64,000 nt of DNA from sequence record PP601403.1; one strand, 5' to 3'. This document shows, one piece after another, positions 2,274-24,853 of the stretch. Positions within the stretch are counted from its first letter, which is position 1. Each line of letters begins with the position of its first letter. The position numbers were made by a program, and so were the translations under genes. A model generated the notes under the pieces. The model was not told the DNA's origin. It was given only the letters and a program-made list of their open reading frames with translations, and made no database searches.

Positions 2274-2303
2274 CCTGTAAGTCAGCATTAGCTGACTTAC
2301 AGG
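2274..2303. terminator. Bidirectional hairpin terminator
   Basis: cctgtaagtcagc-atta-gctgacttacagg, a 13-bp stem between convergent genes. Confidence 0.8.
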
Positions 2304-2318
2304 CTATTTACTTAATCT

Positions 2319-2657
2319 TTAATTTTCTCTTCTAACTCTTGTTACCTGAATAACAGAGTTAATGTTTTCTCTAGTAACAGTCCAAATTCCTTTTAAGTGG
2401 GAGAAATCTTGATTAGGATTTTCTATCCCATTTAAATAAGAAATAGTCCAGATCATATCTTCAGGAATAAGACTATTCATTCCCCCCATACTCCTAAGTA
2501 GTTTATGAAAGTTATTACGATAAGCAAATCGTAAACTATCATCTACGAAAGGAGAGAATGAAGCTCTAGCCAAAAGGATTTCTTTACAGCTTCGAATAAT
2601 GGTTTTGTATTCTTCAGTGTAGAAAAAAGAATTACCAGAGTTCATAGAAATTGGCAT
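2319..2657 (-). CDS. Small protein, possibly T4 gp53-like/LysM-like baseplate wedge protein
   Basis: 112 aa with RBS AAGGAA. The motif AYRNNF...IWTISYLNGIENP resembles the gp53-type Y...W.I..LN.I.DP pattern. Confidence 0.4.
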   Translation of the reverse strand: MPISMNSGNSFFYTEEYKTIIRSCKEILLARASFSPFVDDSLRFAYRNNFHKLLRSMGGMNSLIPEDMIWTISYLNGIENPNQDFSHLKGIWTVTRENINSVIQVTRVRREN

Positions 2658-2693
2658 GACAAAAGTTTCCTTTTTATTAATTTTTTACAAGCC

Positions 2694-2727
2694 CTATAAT
2701 ATTTCAGACCGATATTATTAGAATGTA
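2694..2727 (+). promoter_or_regulatory. Putative early phage promoter (34-bp motif, copy 1)
   Basis: ctataatatttcagaccgatattattagaatgta aligns without gaps to five other intergenic copies. Confidence 0.7.
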
Positions 2728-2748
2728 ATTCTAGGGAGATATTTAAAA

Positions 2749-2871
2749 ATGAAAGACAAGAAACCTAAAAACCAAGTGACCTTTAGAACTGGTGGTGTCG
2801 GTGTCGGCATGAATGCCTGTCGAGCTAACTCATCTGCTGCCAGACTACAGGATCAAAAATATGAAAATTGA
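2749..2871 (+). pseudogene. Orphaned original 5' end of the RNAP beta-C gene (40-aa remnant ORF, not in the ORF track)
   Basis: RBS GGGAG. Translates MKDKKPKNQVTFRTGGVGVGMNACRANSSAARLQDQKYEN*; 24 of 26 core residues match the N-terminus of 3948..6047. Confidence 0.85.
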
Positions 2872-4043
2872 TGAAAGACTACTTGCTTATAAACCAATTT
2901 CAGTTACTCTTAACTTTGATTGGGAAAATACCTCATTTGATCAAAGAGCTCAAATGCGTTGGGACTATATTCAGGAACAGAAAAAGAAAGATCCTAATTA
3001 TGTTGGATATGATTTTCCTGAACATTTCCGTAGCACACATGGTGGAAGAACGAAAGAAACTAAATACAGCGTGACTTTTGACCAACTAATAAGTACCATA
3101 GGTCAGTTAATCAGTGCCAGATATGAAGATGAACTTTTCGTTACCTTTGGAGGTACTAGTCACAAAGGCTATTTAGTAACAGCTATTAATGAAGACGACA
3201 AAAATCAAATGGCGCAGGTTCATCGTATTGTAGCATGTACCTTTATCCCATTGCCAATGTCATTAATTAATAAAAGAGAAAAAGCTATAATCAACCATAA
3301 AAATGACATTGTTACATGTAACCAGGTATCTAATTTAGAGTGGACTACCCTTAGAGGTAACACCATTAAAGCTGTGGAAACAGGTCTAATAGATTCAACT
3401 TCCTTTAAACTTACGGTGACACAACCGGGTCCGTTACTGGGTAACGAATATTATTTCTTTAGTAAAGGAGATTTGGTCAAACAAGGTTTCTCTCATTCTC
3501 CTGTTTGGGAATCTGTTAGAACAGGTTCTGTATATCTATGTGGAACGTGGTCAGAAGTCTCTAAAGAGGAGATGGAAAATAAACCTAGAGGTGTTCCAGA
3601 TAAAGACCTAGTTATTATTAGGGATAAACGTACAGGAAGATCTGATTCCTCTGCTACAGTAGGAACTATAGTTACTGAGGGTCCTTGCAAGGGAGCGAAA
3701 TTCGCCCTTTATGGTGGTTCGCAACTAAAAGAATATGGTTTTGATCAGAGTAGTTTAAATAAAGCCATACGTGGAGGACTTGGGGTTGTCGCTGGTTGCA
3801 CCTGGGAACGTATGACAAGAGAGGAAGCTGTCAATATTCCGATTGGTTTAACGCCTGAACAATTAGACCACATTAACAAAACCAGATTAAAGAAATCAAA
3901 ATAACATTCAAAGTCCACTGGTTTACAGCGGGCTATTTGGAGGAACAATGCAAAAGAAACCGAATAATCAGGTAACCTTTAGAACAGGCGGGGTTGCCGT
4001 AGGAATGAACGCTAGTCGTGCTAACTCATCGGCGGCGAGATTG
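2848..4043 (+). mobile_element. HNH cassette carrying a replacement 5' end for the RNAP beta gene
   Basis: The HNH ORF is flanked by two protein-level copies of the same 26-codon RNAP segment (2770..2847 and 3966..4043). Confidence 0.75.
2861..3904 (+). CDS. Free-standing HNH homing endonuclease 1 (likely start MKIDERLL at 2861, not 2813)
   Basis: VHRIVA...INHKND...N..SNLEW HNH motif plus two C-terminal G...GTW/GCTW-type repeats. RBS CAGGA precedes 2861. Confidence 0.85.
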   Translation: MKIDERLLAYKPISVTLNFDWENTSFDQRAQMRWDYIQEQKKKDPNYVGYDFPEHFRSTHGGRTKETKYSVTFDQLISTIGQLISARYEDELFVTFGGTSHKGYLVTAINEDDKNQMAQVHRIVACTFIPLPMSLINKREKAIINHKNDIVTCNQVSNLEWTTLRGNTIKAVETGLIDSTSFKLTVTQPGPLLGNEYYFFSKGDLVKQGFSHSPVWESVRTGSVYLCGTWSEVSKEEMENKPRGVPDKDLVIIRDKRTGRSDSSATVGTIVTEGPCKGAKFALYGGSQLKEYGFDQSSLNKAIRGGLGVVAGCTWERMTREEAVNIPIGLTPEQLDHINKTRLKKSK

Positions 4044-6047
4044 TTTATGCTCGGTAAACATCTCGGAAAATCGTCTGTTATTTGGCATCCGACAAATAGA
4101 AAGTTTAGTGCTGGTGATGAAGTTGAGTATGGTAAGACTGCTCGTAAAGTAGAAGCAGAGTCTGATGTGGAAGTTGAAGCTATTTTCTTTCCACGTAATA
4201 TCCTTAATACCACCGAGCCTAATCTTTGGGGTAAAGTAAACGTTATAGTTCGTAATCTAGAAACGGGAATTTATGACGTGATTGAACTGGATAAGTTCAA
4301 TACTCAAAACATGGATTTGGGATTCGAGTACAAATACGATGACGATTTACTTCGTAGTATCAAACCTGGTAGTCAATATCGTAAAGGAACTGTGTTTGGT
4401 CAGTCAGCTCGCATTTCTGAAAGTAATGAATGGTGTCCAGGTATTGAAACTAAAGTGGCTGCTATGAGTCATGTGTATACAGAAGAAGATGCTGTTTTGA
4501 TCTTTGAAAGTTATGCGCGTAAGATCGGTGTTACTTTTAGTCGTAAACATGACTTCCAGTGGAACGAAGAAGAGTTCATTCCGCTTAACTTGTACGGTAG
4601 TGCCGATAAGCCACAACTCTGTCCACTGTCTGGGGAACGTGTTCGGGAAGATGGTATTGTAATGGGATTTCGTCGTAAGGATCCTAATGCAGGTATCTCT
4701 GGGATGACTAAACGTTCCTTGATGATTCCAGATCCTATTTATGACGTATTGTTTTACTCAAGTCCAAACTGTATTGTAGCTGATATCGAAGTTCAAACAG
4801 AACGCTACAAGAACCAATCTAATAATCGTAAAGCTGAGAAGCTCACTCAACCTCACACTTTAATCTTGGAAAAGATTGAAGAAGAATATAACAACTATTA
4901 TAACGATATTGTTAAATGGTTCGTTAATAAGGAACGTCAATATGCCGACAATGTTCCTTTGTCAGGTAAACTCTGGAATCTGATCTTTATGGCACGCGGT
5001 GCTATTACAAGGGATTTCAGTACACCTCACTCTAATGGTAAATTCCATAAGGTGAAACGCAAAATCCACAACATCAATCTGAAGGACTGGCGTATTATCG
5101 TTACTCTTAAGGAAGATGTAGAAGGTAAAGTGCGTTTCAAGAATACCGGTATGGATGGTAACAAATCTGTTATCATGAAAATCCTACCAGACTCTATGGC
5201 TCCGGTAGATGAGTATGGTAACAAAGCTGATATGATTGTAGGTAATACCCCTGCATTTCGTCGTCAAACTTTGGGCTCGTTGATCGAGCTTGACGTGAAC
5301 TTTGTTAACCAATATGTTTACCGAGAGATTAAACAAGCTTTTGAAAGTAAGGATTACGCTACAGCTTGGGATAAAGCACATCTGTTCTACAAAACAGTTA
5401 ATCCCTCATTTGGGGAACTGGTAGAACAACTGAATGCTGAAGAACGAATGGCTCACCTAAGATGGATTATGAAAGATGAGAATGAATTCGGGATTCTAGC
5501 ACCTTCTGGTACGGATGACATAGGGATTAAGATCACTGAACGTTTGGCTGATACTTATGCTCATATCAAACCAACTCCTGTTACTTACATGAATGAGAAT
5601 GGAGCTAAGATCACCACCATTCACCCGATTGTAATCAGTTCACTTTATTACTTGATGTTGGATAAGTTTGGTGATGACATTAGTTGTCAATCTATGCCGA
5701 AACTTAATATCTTTGGACTTCCAACCTCACTTAGTAAACACGAACGTTCTCGTGACTTCTATCGAGCCACGTTGAACCGTAACGTTGGTGAAACTGAAGG
5801 TCGGTTGTTTGTTAACCAGAAAGGCGGAGCTGCTGCTGTACGTAGTTTGGCACTAGCTAACAGTCCTGAGTTGTTAAGCTTAGCCGGTAAACGTATTATC
5901 CGTGCTGATAATCCATTCTTGATCAAACATCTGATTAAACCAGGTGAGGAACGTCGTAACCATTCGCTACAAGTGATTGATAACATCATGAGTGACTTTG
6001 GTCTTAAACTTAGAACAGAACGTTCTAGTGACCGTACCAACGATTAA
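3948..6047 (+). CDS. rpoB: Non-virion RNA polymerase beta subunit, C-terminal half (phiKZ gp71-73-like)
   Basis: KNTGMDGNKSVIMKILP..MAP corresponds to the beta motif KMAGRHGNKGVISKILP. Also ADMIVGN...RRQTLG and YYLMLDK. RBS GGAGGA. Confidence 0.9.
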   Translation: MQKKPNNQVTFRTGGVAVGMNASRANSSAARLFMLGKHLGKSSVIWHPTNRKFSAGDEVEYGKTARKVEAESDVEVEAIFFPRNILNTTEPNLWGKVNVIVRNLETGIYDVIELDKFNTQNMDLGFEYKYDDDLLRSIKPGSQYRKGTVFGQSARISESNEWCPGIETKVAAMSHVYTEEDAVLIFESYARKIGVTFSRKHDFQWNEEEFIPLNLYGSADKPQLCPLSGERVREDGIVMGFRRKDPNAGISGMTKRSLMIPDPIYDVLFYSSPNCIVADIEVQTERYKNQSNNRKAEKLTQPHTLILEKIEEEYNNYYNDIVKWFVNKERQYADNVPLSGKLWNLIFMARGAITRDFSTPHSNGKFHKVKRKIHNINLKDWRIIVTLKEDVEGKVRFKNTGMDGNKSVIMKILPDSMAPVDEYGNKADMIVGNTPAFRRQTLGSLIELDVNFVNQYVYREIKQAFESKDYATAWDKAHLFYKTVNPSFGELVEQLNAEERMAHLRWIMKDENEFGILAPSGTDDIGIKITERLADTYAHIKPTPVTYMNENGAKITTIHPIVISSLYYLMLDKFGDDISCQSMPKLNIFGLPTSLSKHERSRDFYRATLNRNVGETEGRLFVNQKGGAAAVRSLALANSPELLSLAGKRIIRADNPFLIKHLIKPGEERRNHSLQVIDNIMSDFGLKLRTERSSDRTND

Positions 6048-6079
6048 GAAGTTCTTTTAGTTTAGTAAAAGAGGATCAA

Positions 6080-8104
6080 ATGAAAACAATTAGATTAAGA
6101 GAATTTGCTGGACTTGATCAAGTTGCAATGCTCAACATGACAGAGCGTCGTTATAAAGTAGAAGTGATCGACGACCAAGGGGAGAAAGTAATCACTGATA
6201 GTTGGTTATTAGCTATCAACTGGTACACGCTTATTCCTCATCGTTACTTCCATGATGAACCTTATCACATTGACGAGGTAATCGTTCTGAAGTCCAAGGA
6301 AGGACGTCAGAGCTTTATTGACGATGACAAGTTGAAACATCCGGTGGATAACTTCCTAGGTCGTATTATGCCTAAGAACGACGATCCTGCTTTCTACGAT
6401 ATGATTAAACAATTGATCTTTGTTTATCATAATGCTTGTCATAACTATTTGTGCGTTAAATCTGAACATGGCGTTGTATCGGCACGTTCTATGGATGTGC
6501 TCCATGTGCTGAGAAATCCAAAGATCGCTGATCTGAAGAAACGTGTTCAATCTGGTCAAACTTGTATGGCTGATGGTGCTAAGGAGTTTGAACAGATCAT
6601 GATGACTGAACCTGATTTTGATAAATCAGTATTCGGGTTGTTGTATCGTACTCGCTCAGTATCAAGTGTTCAGTCATTCCAGTTGGTAATTGCTCGTGGT
6701 GACGTAACTGATCTTAATGGTACTATCCTACCTAATACCATTATGGAATCGTACGCTGATGGCATTACTAACCTTGCTGATAGTCTAGCAGACTCTAAAG
6801 GTGCTGGTTTCTCGTTGATCTCTAACGGACAAGCACTACAAGACTCTGAGTGGTTCCACAAGAAGATTCACAACGTAGCCCAGGTAGTTAAAGGGATTGA
6901 CTACCAAAAGGACTGTGGGAGCACTACAGGGACGATTGTAAAGATTGTCTCTAAAGAGTTTAAACAGTCTTTGGCTGGGAAGTGGCGTATTATGGAAGAT
7001 GGTTCTTTGGAACTATTGATCGGTAAAGCGTTGGATAAGATCGAAACTGGAGAAAAGATCACTTATCGTTCTGTTGCTTGGTGTAGACATGGTAGAACAG
7101 GAAGACCGTGTTCTGTGTGTTTTGGTAAAATGGAATCAGCTCTACCGTTTAACCCATATACCAGAAGAGGAGCAGTACCTGGATTGTTCTACGGTTCTAC
7201 TCTTGCTGAACCTATTGGTCAGTCTATCCTTAAGACTAAACACCGGATCGGTTCTGCATCTGCTAAAGGGTTTGTGGTTAACCGAGCTGATGCGGATTAC
7301 ATCACCGGTGATGAGTCTGGTGATTACATCTACTTTAAGAAAGAGATCCTTAATGAAGATTCTGATCCATATTTGATTTTGGATAAGGAAACACAACAGG
7401 ACTTCTCTGACTTTAAGTTTATGGAAAACTTGGAAGATATTGATCTGTCCCGTGTTCTTAGAACATATGAAACAATTAAACTGCGGGTAAGTATTTCTAA
7501 CCCTATGTTTGAGAGTAAGAAAGCAGTTCATTATCCAATCATCACTACTACTGTTGCGAGTCGCGACGCAAGGATGACCAGAGCACTTGTAGAGTACTTG
7601 TTGGAACAACCTATAGAAGAGGAGGGTAAAACCTTTAAGATCTCCCTGAAGGGGTTTGATGCTAAGGAACCAGCATTTGAGTTACCGCAAGTAAACGAGG
7701 ACTTGGATGCCTATCGTAAGAGGGTAGAAAACAAGTTTAAGTTTGATGAAGTTAAGAACCGTTGGGATCACTGGATTACTCCTGAAATCTTTGGTGAGTA
7801 CGTAGTATCTCTTTGGAAGGTAATTGATGAGAAGTACAAAGGTGCTAATATCATCATGACCGATATCTTCCTCTGGGCTTGTGCCGCTATTGATCCTAAT
7901 AACTTGGATTACGGATTACCTGGTGAAACTGACAAACGTGTATTTGTTTCACTGCATGAGTCCATTATCCATGGTGGAATGAGTAATGCACTAGTATACG
8001 GTTATCAGAAAGAGAGCTTAATTAACGAACCATATCGGTTTCTGGTTAAGAACCGTAAGAGTGGTGTATTGGAAGCCTTCATGAATCCAATTGCAATTAA
8101 GTAA
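6080..8104 (+). CDS. rpoC: Non-virion RNA polymerase beta' subunit, C-terminal part (phiKZ gp74-like)
   Basis: Bridge-helix-like GAGFSLISNGQALQDSEWFHKKIH, DCGS, Zn-site C...CSVCFG, and trigger-loop-like LAEPIGQSILKTKH. Confidence 0.88.
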   Translation: MKTIRLREFAGLDQVAMLNMTERRYKVEVIDDQGEKVITDSWLLAINWYTLIPHRYFHDEPYHIDEVIVLKSKEGRQSFIDDDKLKHPVDNFLGRIMPKNDDPAFYDMIKQLIFVYHNACHNYLCVKSEHGVVSARSMDVLHVLRNPKIADLKKRVQSGQTCMADGAKEFEQIMMTEPDFDKSVFGLLYRTRSVSSVQSFQLVIARGDVTDLNGTILPNTIMESYADGITNLADSLADSKGAGFSLISNGQALQDSEWFHKKIHNVAQVVKGIDYQKDCGSTTGTIVKIVSKEFKQSLAGKWRIMEDGSLELLIGKALDKIETGEKITYRSVAWCRHGRTGRPCSVCFGKMESALPFNPYTRRGAVPGLFYGSTLAEPIGQSILKTKHRIGSASAKGFVVNRADADYITGDESGDYIYFKKEILNEDSDPYLILDKETQQDFSDFKFMENLEDIDLSRVLRTYETIKLRVSISNPMFESKKAVHYPIITTTVASRDARMTRALVEYLLEQPIEEEGKTFKISLKGFDAKEPAFELPQVNEDLDAYRKRVENKFKFDEVKNRWDHWITPEIFGEYVVSLWKVIDEKYKGANIIMTDIFLWACAAIDPNNLDYGLPGETDKRVFVSLHESIIHGGMSNALVYGYQKESLINEPYRFLVKNRKSGVLEAFMNPIAIK

Positions 8105-13359: not shown

Positions 13360-13404
13360 TTTACTACTCCAGATGTTTATAGTTAAAGGGACATAAAATC
13401 CCCC

Positions 13405-13438
13405 CTATAATTTCTCAGACAGATATAATCCTAATGTA
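13405..13438 (+). promoter_or_regulatory. Putative early promoter (copy 2), upstream of HNH2
   Basis: ctataatttctcagacagatataatcctaatgta. Confidence 0.6.
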
Positions 13439-13470: not shown

Positions 13471-14535
13471 ATGAGTGAAAATAATTACGTTTCAGTAGAT
13501 GCTGTATTAACCGATGTATACAAGCCTCTGACAGATATCTTAGGTTTGCAATATGATGGCACCATGAGTTACGAAGAACGTGTTCAAAAGCGTTACAATT
13601 ACGTTAAAGAGCAATTGGAACTAGATCCTAACTATGAAGGTTGGGATTGGGTAGAATATCAAGTTTATAGTAATAAACAAGACGATCTACCAGAACTACT
13701 TTCCAGTGATAAAGCCCTTGTATCCACTAAGGGTAAAATCGCTAAGAAGAAACTTAATACCAAAGGGTTCACTGTTTCTATTGGAACACTAACAGCTAGA
13801 TACCTTCGTATTGAGATTAAGTTCACTAATGGTGAGAATAAACCAGTAGCAGTGCAACGTGTAGTAGCATCTACTTTTGTACCAAGAGATAACACCTTAG
13901 AGGATATTCCATATTTGACACTAACAGTTTCTCACGGTAATGGTGTTCCTACCCATAACCAGTTTAATAACTTGAGTTGGAAAACTAAACAACAAGCTAT
14001 TAATCATAGTTTAAAGGAAAAGCAAACTGAGAAAGTTAAAGTCACTTATCCTGTTGTAGGTACATTTATCAAGGATGGAGAGCATATGAACAAAACTATC
14101 GTATTCAATACACGTAAAGAGATCATCGATAGTGGGTTAGACGTTGTTACTATTTATCAAGTACTCCGGGGAGAACTCCAAACAGCATTTGGTTGTACTT
14201 GGAAATGTACTGATAAAGAACAAACATCTACGCTTCCAGAAAACTTTGAACAAGTGCTTTACTTTATCAAAGCTAATAAAGGGACGGTTGGCCAAGAGGT
14301 TAAACCTATTCTAGCTACTGTAATAAAAGAAGGGCAGTTTAAAGGAACCCGGTTTGTTCTAATGGGAAGAAAAGAGGTAACAGACTCTGGTTTTGATCAA
14401 GCTCATGTTTCTAAGGTATGTAATGGAAAACTCAACTCGCATAAAGGTTGTAGTTGGAAATACATAACTCAAGAAGAAGCTAGTAAAATACCCAGAGGTA
14501 TTACACCAGAACTAAAGTCATACTTGCTAGGCTAA
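13471..14535 (+). CDS. Free-standing HNH-family protein 2 (degenerate active-site motif)
   Basis: Same architecture as HNH1 and HNH3: YEERVQKRY..EQLE.DP N-terminus and two GCTW/GCSW repeats. The HNH motif reads VQRVVA...VSHGNG...NNLSW...QAINHS. Confidence 0.8.
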   Translation: MSENNYVSVDAVLTDVYKPLTDILGLQYDGTMSYEERVQKRYNYVKEQLELDPNYEGWDWVEYQVYSNKQDDLPELLSSDKALVSTKGKIAKKKLNTKGFTVSIGTLTARYLRIEIKFTNGENKPVAVQRVVASTFVPRDNTLEDIPYLTLTVSHGNGVPTHNQFNNLSWKTKQQAINHSLKEKQTEKVKVTYPVVGTFIKDGEHMNKTIVFNTRKEIIDSGLDVVTIYQVLRGELQTAFGCTWKCTDKEQTSTLPENFEQVLYFIKANKGTVGQEVKPILATVIKEGQFKGTRFVLMGRKEVTDSGFDQAHVSKVCNGKLNSHKGCSWKYITQEEASKIPRGITPELKSYLLG

Positions 14536-23854: not shown

Positions 23855-24853
23855 ATGTCAATTAAAACATTAACTGAAATACTAGGTCTTTCTCTTGAAT
23901 TGAAAGATTATGAAGAACGTGTTCAAAAGAGATATGACTACATTCAAGAACAATTAGAGAAAGATCCTGAGTTTGTAGCTTATGACTATCTGGAATATTG
24001 GCATGGTAGAGCTGATATTCACTATCTGTTTAAAGAAATTATTATTAGTTCTAAGGGAGACTATTATCAGGAGAAGAACGGTGTATGGTCAGAAGCTGAG
24101 CGCTTTAAAACTAAAGCATATCTAGAAAAGGGGTTCAGGTTAGTCGGACACGGGCCAAAAACTTTCCAAACACACAGGGCGGTTGGATCAGTTTTTATTC
24201 CTAAGTACGAACACCTTAAAGACGTACCTTATTGGAAACTTGAGGTAAACCATAAAGATGGCGATAAACACAATCCAGATTTCTCTAACCTAGAATGGAT
24301 GACTAAATCTGAAAACACTCAACACGCTCTTGAAAATGGACTCCAGACATCTGGGTTAAATGACCCTAATACTATTCCTTATCTAGCTACAGTCGTTATG
24401 GAAGGAAAGTATAAAGGTCAACAGTTCGTACTTGCCGGAACCGCTGCATTTGAAAAGGAGGGGATCTCTAGAAGTTCTGTTAGAGATCAATCAGAGGGTA
24501 AATTCCGCGCTATTGCTGGATGTACTTGGAAAGTTATCACTAAAGAGGAAGCTAAAGATTATCCGCAAGGAACCCCAGAGGGATTTATGACATTCCTTAA
24601 ATCCAATAGCGCTTTATCAGATCCTAAGGTTAAACCAGTGTTAGGGGTGGTGCAAAATGGAGCTTTTAAAGGGCATCATTTCTGTTTGTACGGCGGGAAA
24701 CACATAGCCGAGAATGGGTTTGGTCAAGCTCATGTATCAAGACACGCTAAACACAATAAAGTTTATAAAGGAGTATTATGGAAGTATATAACACAGGAAG
24801 AAGCTACTAACTATCCAAAAGGATTGGATAAAGAGATATACGAGACTTTATAA
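23855..24853 (+). CDS. Free-standing HNH homing endonuclease 3
   Basis: THRAVG...VNHKDGDKHN..SNLEWMTKSENTQHA, a near-canonical HNH motif. Paralog of HNH1 and HNH2. Confidence 0.88.
   Translation: MSIKTLTEILGLSLELKDYEERVQKRYDYIQEQLEKDPEFVAYDYLEYWHGRADIHYLFKEIIISSKGDYYQEKNGVWSEAERFKTKAYLEKGFRLVGHGPKTFQTHRAVGSVFIPKYEHLKDVPYWKLEVNHKDGDKHNPDFSNLEWMTKSENTQHALENGLQTSGLNDPNTIPYLATVVMEGKYKGQQFVLAGTAAFEKEGISRSSVRDQSEGKFRAIAGCTWKVITKEEAKDYPQGTPEGFMTFLKSNSALSDPKVKPVLGVVQNGAFKGHHFCLYGGKHIAENGFGQAHVSRHAKHNKVYKGVLWKYITQEEATNYPKGLDKEIYETL

Follow-up and report, generated by a model that had tools for sequence, protein, structure and literature searches.

A 64,000-nucleotide stretch of sequence record PP601403.1 (hereafter the window; its position 1 is record position 124001) contains an open reading frame (ORF) for an HNH endonuclease, which we call HNH1, that sits 33 codons into an essential RNA polymerase gene and is followed by a second beginning for that same gene. 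The record is that of Aeromonas phage ACP1, a 236-kb jumbo phage of the genus Ferozepurvirus, to which window positions 2300-6100 were 100% identical. We consider it probable that, in some Ferozepurvirus-like Aeromonas jumbo phages, the homologue of phiKZ gp71-73, a non-virion RNA polymerase subunit gene, has the gene of an I-HmuI-like HNH homing endonuclease at its 5' end, and that the new gene start is a donor allele acquired with it by co-conversion. GenBank lists three genes here, ACP1_0133 (2749-2871), ACP1_0134 (2861-3904) and ACP1_0135 (3948-6047), each labelled as a hypothetical protein; the initial annotation of this DNA had taken the first of these to be unannotated.

Two beginnings of one polymerase gene

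The upstream ORF (2749-2871; 40 codons, on the plus strand as are HNH1, the working polymerase gene and the signals between them) is translated as MKDKKPKNQVTFRTGGVGVGMNACRANSSAARLQDQKYEN. It consists of the resident first 33 codons of the gp71-73 homologue (2749-2846) and a short piece of cassette sequence (2847-2871), and we refer to it as the leftover ORF. It had initially been described as running into HNH1; instead it ends at TGA 2869-2871, with a second TGA directly behind (2869-2874), a double stop that lies inside HNH1 codons 3-5, and it overlaps the HNH1 ATG at 2861 by 11 nt in a different frame. Beyond HNH1, an ATG at 3948 led by the ribosome-binding site (RBS) GGAGGA (3939-3944, 3 nt ahead of the ATG) opens a complete ORF of 699 residues that extends to 6047. 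The first ~42 codons of this ORF (3948-4073; MQKKPNNQ...FMLGKHLGKSS) form what we call the imported, nuclease-linked start, in which 3966-4043 duplicates 2770-2847.

Across these 26 codons, 24 residues are identical, with 8 codons identical and 16 differing synonymously, exactly as the initial annotation had counted, and two changes are non-synonymous (Gly to Ala and Cys to Ser). There were 20 nucleotide differences between the copies, 17 of them at third positions, and in 100,000 trials with 20 random substitutions not one produced two or fewer non-synonymous codons (mean 12.4). By Nei-Gojobori counting, the non-synonymous distance (dN) between the remnant and the imported copy was 0.036 and the synonymous distance (dS) was saturated. 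The remnant compared with pAEv1810, a nuclease-free relative, gave a dS of 0.278, which matches that of the gene body (0.276) and thus identifies the upstream copy as the resident allele; the dN of the same comparison was 0.048, above the gene-body value of 0.003. Judged by these sequence relationships, 2749-2846 is resident in origin and 2847-4073 is foreign.

Two copies of the same 26-33 codons lying 1.2 kb apart are what a local tandem duplication of the gene start that diverged in place, or an assembly artefact, would leave, yet we find such an explanation scarcely credible: dS between the copies is saturated versus a dS of 0.28 for the backbone to its relatives, and the imported copy is the single start of the metagenomic contig L009, described below. 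The ACP1 layout was reproduced in five further contigs, among them L021, L014 and L016, and its repetition in independent assemblies argues that it is no assembly artefact.

The 699-residue protein is 97-98% identical to the 700-residue proteins of nuclease-free relatives. It matched PHROG 3295, RNA polymerase beta subunit (7e-212, residues 3-697), the ORF from 3948 covering profile positions 4-697 of 698, and it matched PDB 7OGP chain C (PHIKZ071; E = 5e-38, residues 21-641). The designation "beta C-terminal half" for gp71-73 derives from the phiKZ structure papers. From the full-length ORF, and from the genomes with a single nuclease-linked start described below, we infer that the imported start at 3948 is the one in use.

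Nuclease-free relatives have a single start

Empty sites were found in pAEv1810, AVP1, PS1 and PS2, four isolates whose aligned portions of this region share 94-95% identity with ACP1. All four lack 1197 bp (2847-4045) and have one 700-residue polymerase gene each. As the initial annotation had anticipated for relatives without the nuclease, their single start matches the upstream (2749) copy of ACP1 at the nucleotide level, e.g., pAEv1810 showed 8 mismatches to it in 98 nt, with identity stopping at 2846; however, this start is joined to YMLGKN and not, as had been expected, to FMLGKH. The empty alleles read ...ARL-YMLGKN, and FMLGKH..KSS belongs to the foreign tract. The RBS GGGAGA upstream of the leftover ORF (2734-2739) has the sequence and spacing found in the nuclease-free relatives; it belonged to the original polymerase start and now serves the leftover ORF.

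The idea that the insertion brings its own RBS and a diverged copy of the first ~33 codons held for the Shine-Dalgarno (SD) sequence, the ATG and the diverged start, all of which are brought in, but the foreign tract extends further, to ~4073, which is 30 nt past the duplicated part. Its right boundary is marked by 12 mismatches between ACP1 and pAEv1810 in 4046-4073 and by ~1 per 30 nt afterwards. The locus thus combines the presence or absence of HNH1 with a flanking conversion tract. Because the 5' end of the gene is replaced, the insert must supply its own SD and ATG, and the nuclease gene now separates the working gene from the resident promoter. Isolate phages did not yield the donor allele; their closest DNA match to 3905-4130 was 80%.

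Two layouts at one locus

We gathered further contigs through HNH proteins 65-96% identical to HNH1 in a large protein collection and through two leftover peptides. Wherever the flank was present, the HNH gene lay downstream of a 112-residue divergent gene and upstream of the polymerase gene; the L022 contig ends inside the HNH gene, its downstream side falling outside the contig. The contigs represent three phage backbones, namely A (ACP1-type), B (~85% identical to ACP1) and C, and two layouts that we call class I and class II. All HNH genes at the locus form one clade (100/99 support). Scans of IMG/VR with the HNH protein and with the polymerase protein returned no close relatives, only three loci at 66-68% identity. 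A scan of JGI metagenomes for TCTGTTATTTGGCATCCRAC gave two matches, both by chance in unrelated DNA, and these were rejected.

Class II, with the 40-codon leftover ORF, comprises ACP1 and five contigs on two phage backbones. The junction CAGACT/ACAGGATCAAAAATATG is identical in ACP1, L014, L016 and L021 (backbone A) and in L022 (backbone B), and L015 (backbone B) has a variant junction, TAC/GGGGTGAAATATG, a codon further on. None of the six leftover ORFs is disrupted and all share one stop, those of ACP1 and L014 differ by five synonymous and no non-synonymous changes, and a search with the 40-residue peptide recovered two class II loci independently. The leftover of L022 has B-type sequence as far as ~codon 30 but ACP1-type sequence over the final ~11 nt ahead of the junction, a switch that indicates a crossover inside the leftover; together, a junction common to two backbones and a crossover in one remnant indicate that the layout is inherited and recombining.

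Class I comprises eight contigs, in which the same HNH clade is represented by four or more distinct cassettes: L009 (backbone A), L010-12 and L017-20 (backbone B), and L013 (backbone C). Here a small hairpin (CTCTTGTATAGACAAGAG or one of its variants) stands between a promoter-like block and the HNH gene, which is followed by a polymerase gene with its own SD; there is no leftover at all. The HNH gene is thus located between genes in class I, whereas in ACP1 and the five other class II loci its left end lies inside former coding sequence. The two class I contigs that span the polymerase gene, L009 and L013, encode 699-700 residues. In L009, whose backbone is 94-96% identical to ACP1, the sole start is 91% identical to the imported start of ACP1 (115/126 nt). 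The occurrence of the same HNH clade at the locus without a remnant indicates that the element is in essence a free-standing endonuclease gene located ahead of the polymerase gene.

These class I genomes bear on the initial view that the recoded start was the cassette's own device. L009 carries a 91% identical start as its only one, and on this comparison co-conversion brought in the "recoded" start as a naturally occurring allele of a distant donor, and it is no purpose-built device. Since both copies were working genes in different phages, no special process is needed to account for the synonymous "recoding". A dedicated cassette, for which insertion into the coding sequence at codons 33/34 is the only mode of homing and the recoded start is an adaptation that repairs the gene and protects the site, would accord with the one junction shared by ACP1 and four contigs on two backbones, with the crossover within the L022 leftover, with the six intact leftover ORFs and with the purely synonymous differences between the ACP1 and L014 leftovers. 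We nevertheless think it unlikely: at least four diverged cassette types of the same clade occupy the locus without a leftover, which means that insertion within the gene is not required; the "recoded" start is the ordinary sole start of L009; and the foreign tract continues for 30 nt beyond the duplication, an overrun that co-conversion predicts and a fixed-ended cassette does not. The synonymous variation among leftovers may, moreover, be inherited from the working alleles of different recipients.

The leftover could conversely be an accident, i.e., a decaying pseudogene fragment from a single imprecise repair, with no role in mobility or expression. Class I shows the leftover to be dispensable, and the dN of the ACP1 leftover to pAEv1810 is well above that of the gene body, as such decay would predict. 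However, class II spans two backbones and HNH bodies that share only 50-70% identity, its leftover is in every case an intact ORF of 40 codons with an unchanged stop, and the five differences between the ACP1 and L014 leftovers include no non-synonymous one, which makes this explanation quite unlikely in our view.

A variable island with linked start alleles

Where the backbone is 94-100% identical to ACP1, the HNH gene shares ~63-82% identity with that of ACP1, and the HNH body of L022 (backbone B) is ~50% identical to it. The linked gene start, taken as the first ~42 codons, is 64% (L016) and 91% (L009) identical to that of ACP1, and identity with ACP1 resumes at GTTATTTGGCATCC, at ~4077. 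Every HNH variant is accompanied by its own start allele. The HNH genes are also mosaics. Among loci that have the ACP1 junction, identity is 89-99% over the first 150 nt and 50-70% in the bodies, which suggests that HNH bodies are swapped behind a constant N-terminal module. Between HNH1 and the HNH genes of L016 and L022, identity falls to ~50-60% in the catalytic and DNA-binding body.

The start alleles differ in a simple signature. Cys24 is present in 10/10 nuclease-free or leftover alleles and Asn39 in 4/4 nuclease-free alleles; the nuclease-linked starts examined have Ser or Asn at residue 24 and His39 in 10/10 cases. Residues 24 and 39 bracket the class II junction at codons 33/34, on which basis the nuclease target would lie near codons 24-39. 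A protein search with polymerase residues 1-60 for more start alleles returned nothing significant.

In the nuclease-free PS1 and PS2 (L003 and L004), polymerase codons 10-47 are far more divergent than the remainder of the gene, with non-synonymous changes included. The divergent stretch is equivalent to ACP1 positions 2776-2848 and 4046-4082; in 2776-2848 there are 26 mismatches to the ACP1 leftover, over a background of ~5%. These alleles have some residues in common with the nuclease-linked alleles, yet they keep Cys24, Tyr34 and Asn39. Their divergence may be the scar of earlier cutting and repair.

It would also suit a different explanation, in which this locus is not the target of the HNH gene and the island is a recombination hot spot or reflects diversifying selection on the polymerase N-terminus (e.g., for escape from another nuclease or defence). 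We regard this as very unlikely: HNH variant and start allele travel together, and a flanking conversion tract beside an HNH gene that is present or absent at a single site in genomes 94-98% identical is a classic signature of homing (PMC2988022).

The HNH1 endonuclease

HNH1 (2861-3904; ACP1_0134) encodes 347 residues. A profile built from 24 members of its HNH family matched 1U3E (I-HmuI) with an E-value of 7.9e-15 over chain residues 15-165 of 174, including the HNH motif. HNH1 itself matched PHROG 59 HNH endonuclease at 7e-21, and its Pfam HNH_3 match was below threshold (17.8 bits versus a cut-off of 24.8). His146, Asn158, Leu159 and Trp161 are invariant in the family. The dN/dS of HNH1 between relatives is 0.12-0.21, i.e., the gene is under purifying selection, which indicates that it is maintained as a working protein. 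I-HmuI is a nicking homing endonuclease of the HNH type from Bacillus phage SPO1. HNH1 has double its length and carries a further two repeats at the C-terminus (CGTW..KEEM and GCTW..REEA); the residue ahead of the catalytic His is Asn in HNH1 but Asp in I-HmuI, and HNH1 is not intron-encoded.

A self-splicing intron at 2847-4043 (or an HNH intein), with 2749-2846 as exon 1 joined to 4044 onwards, would have precedents. The phiKZ gp72 protein is an HNH nuclease in an intron of gp71-73. An intron HNH is also present in a virion RNA polymerase gene of PhiPA3 (PMC11620839). Against this, a search of 2300-4600 on both strands gave no Rfam match at E≤1; the HNH gene leaves only 14 nt of other sequence to its left and 139 nt to its right, the latter including 96 nt that evolve as coding sequence; and exon 1 is missing from class I genomes, although L009 and L013 retain a complete gene for 699-700 residues with an SD of its own. 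An intein was rejected, as HNH1 is a separate ORF with its own start and stop, bounded by stops and in a frame that differs from those of both polymerase copies, and the polymerase protein has 699 residues versus 700 in relatives. An intron or intein is thus highly improbable, in agreement with the initial annotation, which had recognized neither.

Two more HNH genes of the same family, at 13471-14535 (HNH2) and 23855-24853, encode proteins 28-29% identical to HNH1. Both are free-standing at the end of a plus-strand block, facing a convergent gene; ACP1_0145 carries a hypothetical label only. A flanking duplication was absent at both of these paralogues in the window, which indicates that the family as a whole does not share the duplication.

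Proposed mechanism

We propose that the moving and varying unit is the HNH gene with the hairpin behind it, the SD and the first ~42 polymerase codons. HNH1 would nick or cut empty alleles in the 5' coding region, near codons 24-39, with the class II junction at codons 33/34 marking the cut site, and repair from the donor would copy the HNH gene plus the donor's own gene start. If the left crossover fell in the promoter, class I would result, in which the unit replaces everything between the promoter and ~codon 42; if the left end was fixed at the break, class II would result, in which the left end of the unit is joined to the resident gene after codon 33 and the resident promoter, RBS and 33 codons remain as the 40-codon ORF. 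Once class II had formed, the leftover would represent the left homology arm abutting the break, with which the L022 crossover would fit. It may further link translation from the HNH1 start, whose own AGGA is weak, to the strong resident RBS. The polymerase subunit would be made from the imported SD and the ATG at 3948, splicing not being needed, and the linked allele would be resistant to the nuclease. The destruction of the cleavage site, the class of the promoter and the nuclease target are likewise putative, read from the DNA.

Several points weigh against this proposal. Enzymes of the I-HmuI type can nick even DNA in which their gene is already present, which implies that resistance of the linked allele is not required. 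The signature at residues 24 and 39 rests on few independent alleles and could reflect shared ancestry. Inside the clade, the HNH tree is star-shaped and the genes are mosaics, and neither class I nor class II emerges as the earlier layout. The 10-14 nt upstream of the class II HNH ATG are unlike those of any class I locus found, and a direct donor for the left junction of ACP1 was not identified among the loci found.

A bolder version, for which we would claim somewhat less than an even chance, is that class II is an intron-like, splice-free homing cassette: the nuclease would cut at codons 33/34, the leftover would give homology as far as the break and pass ribosomes from its strong RBS to the overlapping HNH start, the imported start would restore the gene and remove the target, and HNH variants, each with a start allele of its own, would displace one another as weapons against the polymerase gene of co-infecting jumbo phages. 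If true, such a cassette with competing HNH variants would explain an island of ~50-82% identity on backbones that are 94-100% identical.

Flanking signals and neighbouring genes

The leader between the left junction and the HNH1 ATG (ACAGGATCAAAAAT, 2847-2860) begins where identity with the empty alleles stops, and it contains the weak SD AGGA at 2849-2852. At the other end of HNH1, a hairpin (3907-3941) lies between the HNH stop and the polymerase SD, and its stem base pairs with the first SD bases; the imported RBS itself is identical in L009, L014, L016 and L021. The hairpin folds at -13 to -19 kcal/mol in ACP1, L009, L014 and L016 (z of -2.4 to -4.9), and in L016 a two-sided change keeps the stem, consistent with compensation as judged by eye. 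It has no counterpart in the backbone B cassette of L010. The hairpin could provide translational or RNA-stability control of the polymerase gene.

Upstream of the leftover ORF, a block at 2680-2720 (plus strand; TTTTTTACAAGCCCTATAATATTTCAGACCGATATTATT) is conserved across backbones A, B and C and forms the left homology region of class I genomes; we consider it a putative promoter. A sigma-70 scan upstream of 2749 found nothing meaningful, and the block is not a sigma-70 match. Its core, CCTATAATATTTCAGA, had 5 matches at ≤3 mismatches in the window versus 1.1 expected. A near copy of this core, with 2 mismatches, lies at 13404-13419, ~50 nt upstream of HNH2, and the motif may be a phage promoter common to the polymerase gene and HNH2. 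Behind the promoter block, all backbone B and C loci and L009 (4973-4990) have a further small hairpin (CTCTTGTATAGACAAGAG or CTCTTGTGGGGACAGGAG); the loci with it include the L010, L013, L015, L017 and L022 equivalents, and the nuclease-free backbone A phages are without it. In L009 this hairpin seems to have arrived together with the cassette.

The gene after ACP1_0135 encodes a second polymerase subunit (6080-8104; PHROG 3015). Upstream of the locus, a 507-residue protein (734-2257; PHROG 3520, of unknown function) has a long, low-complexity C-terminal tail rich in Asn, Gln and Gly.

Relation to known systems

The initial proposal of a splicing-free replacement of a gene start was right at its core, and the relatives were as it predicted; however, the element also occurs at this locus without the duplication, and the principle is known from organelles, namely fungal mitochondria (PMC3630166). 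There, mitochondrial endonuclease ORFs come with a foreign replacement for the 3' end of the gene in which they reside, forming "gene hybrids", e.g., in atp6 of Allomyces macrogynus, in atp6, atp9, cox2 and nad3 of Glomus sp., in atp9 of Rhizopus and in cox2 of Mortierella (PMC3630166). In these, the foreign C-terminal segment is the one in use and the native C-terminus persists downstream; DNA identity to relatives is 91-98% for the native copy and 64-81% for the foreign one, although the protein hardly differs (PMC3630166). ACP1 likewise has an intronless endonuclease ORF in a protein gene, a foreign gene end that is presumably in use, and the native end as an unused duplicate. The gene hybrids, though, swap the 3' end, which is read in frame from the resident start, whereas ACP1 swaps the 5' end with a new SD and ATG (PMC3630166). 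ACP1 differs further in being a phage and not an organelle, in having an HNH and not a LAGLIDADG or GIY-YIG nuclease, and in that a leftover-free layout also exists. By analogy, the ACP1 arrangement is the mirror image of the mitochondrial gene hybrids, which are closest to it in logic.

Free-standing endonucleases of the T4 type (SegB, SegE, SegG and MobE) show intronless homing, with a cut site hundreds to thousands of bp from the insertion site (PMC2988022). The ACP1 element resembles them in presence or absence among close relatives and in co-conversion of flanking DNA, and class I, in which the nuclease gene also lies between genes, fits fully; in contrast to the T4 cases, the ACP1 tract ends ~125 nt into the adjacent gene, and a class II arrangement, inside a gene with a duplicated start, is not described for T4 (PMC2988022). 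Phage genes split by endonuclease insertion are known too, i.e., Aeh1 nrdA with mobE, the T4 topoisomerase genes 39/60 with mobA, and gene 43 of phage 25 (PMC2988022). Like these, ACP1 has an endonuclease gene within an essential phage gene, with no intron or intein and with function kept; unlike these, in which two polypeptides reassemble, ACP1 encodes a complete 699-residue protein and the 33-codon leftover is redundant (PMC2988022).

A third comparison is with PhiPA3 gp210, an intron-encoded HNH in an RNA polymerase gene, for which 17 silent mutations were engineered to block recognition (PMC11620839). Both are HNH nicking-type nucleases in an RNA polymerase gene of a chimallivirus-like phage, possibly serving competition in co-infection, and the 17 silent mutations parallel the 16 natural synonymous differences of ACP1 (PMC11620839). 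PhiPA3 gp210 and phiKZ gp72 are in group I introns, whereas ACP1 shows no intron signature and its working gene has its own start. A literature search, limited in extent, found no report of a duplicated gene start beside a phage endonuclease gene.

For annotation and phylogeny, the leftover ORF and the mosaic 5' end can mislead where the polymerase gene is used as a marker. The nuclease variants and their linked target alleles can be paired from sequence, and they would provide a natural set of enzymes and resistant sites for work on HNH specificity, homing and phage-phage interference. Within the non-virion RNA polymerase gene of jumbo phages of the nucleus-forming type, the locus is a short island of extreme variability. 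Besides introns or inteins and the splitting of genes, a spare gene beginning with its own translation signals would be a third way for a selfish nuclease to reside inside an essential phage gene.

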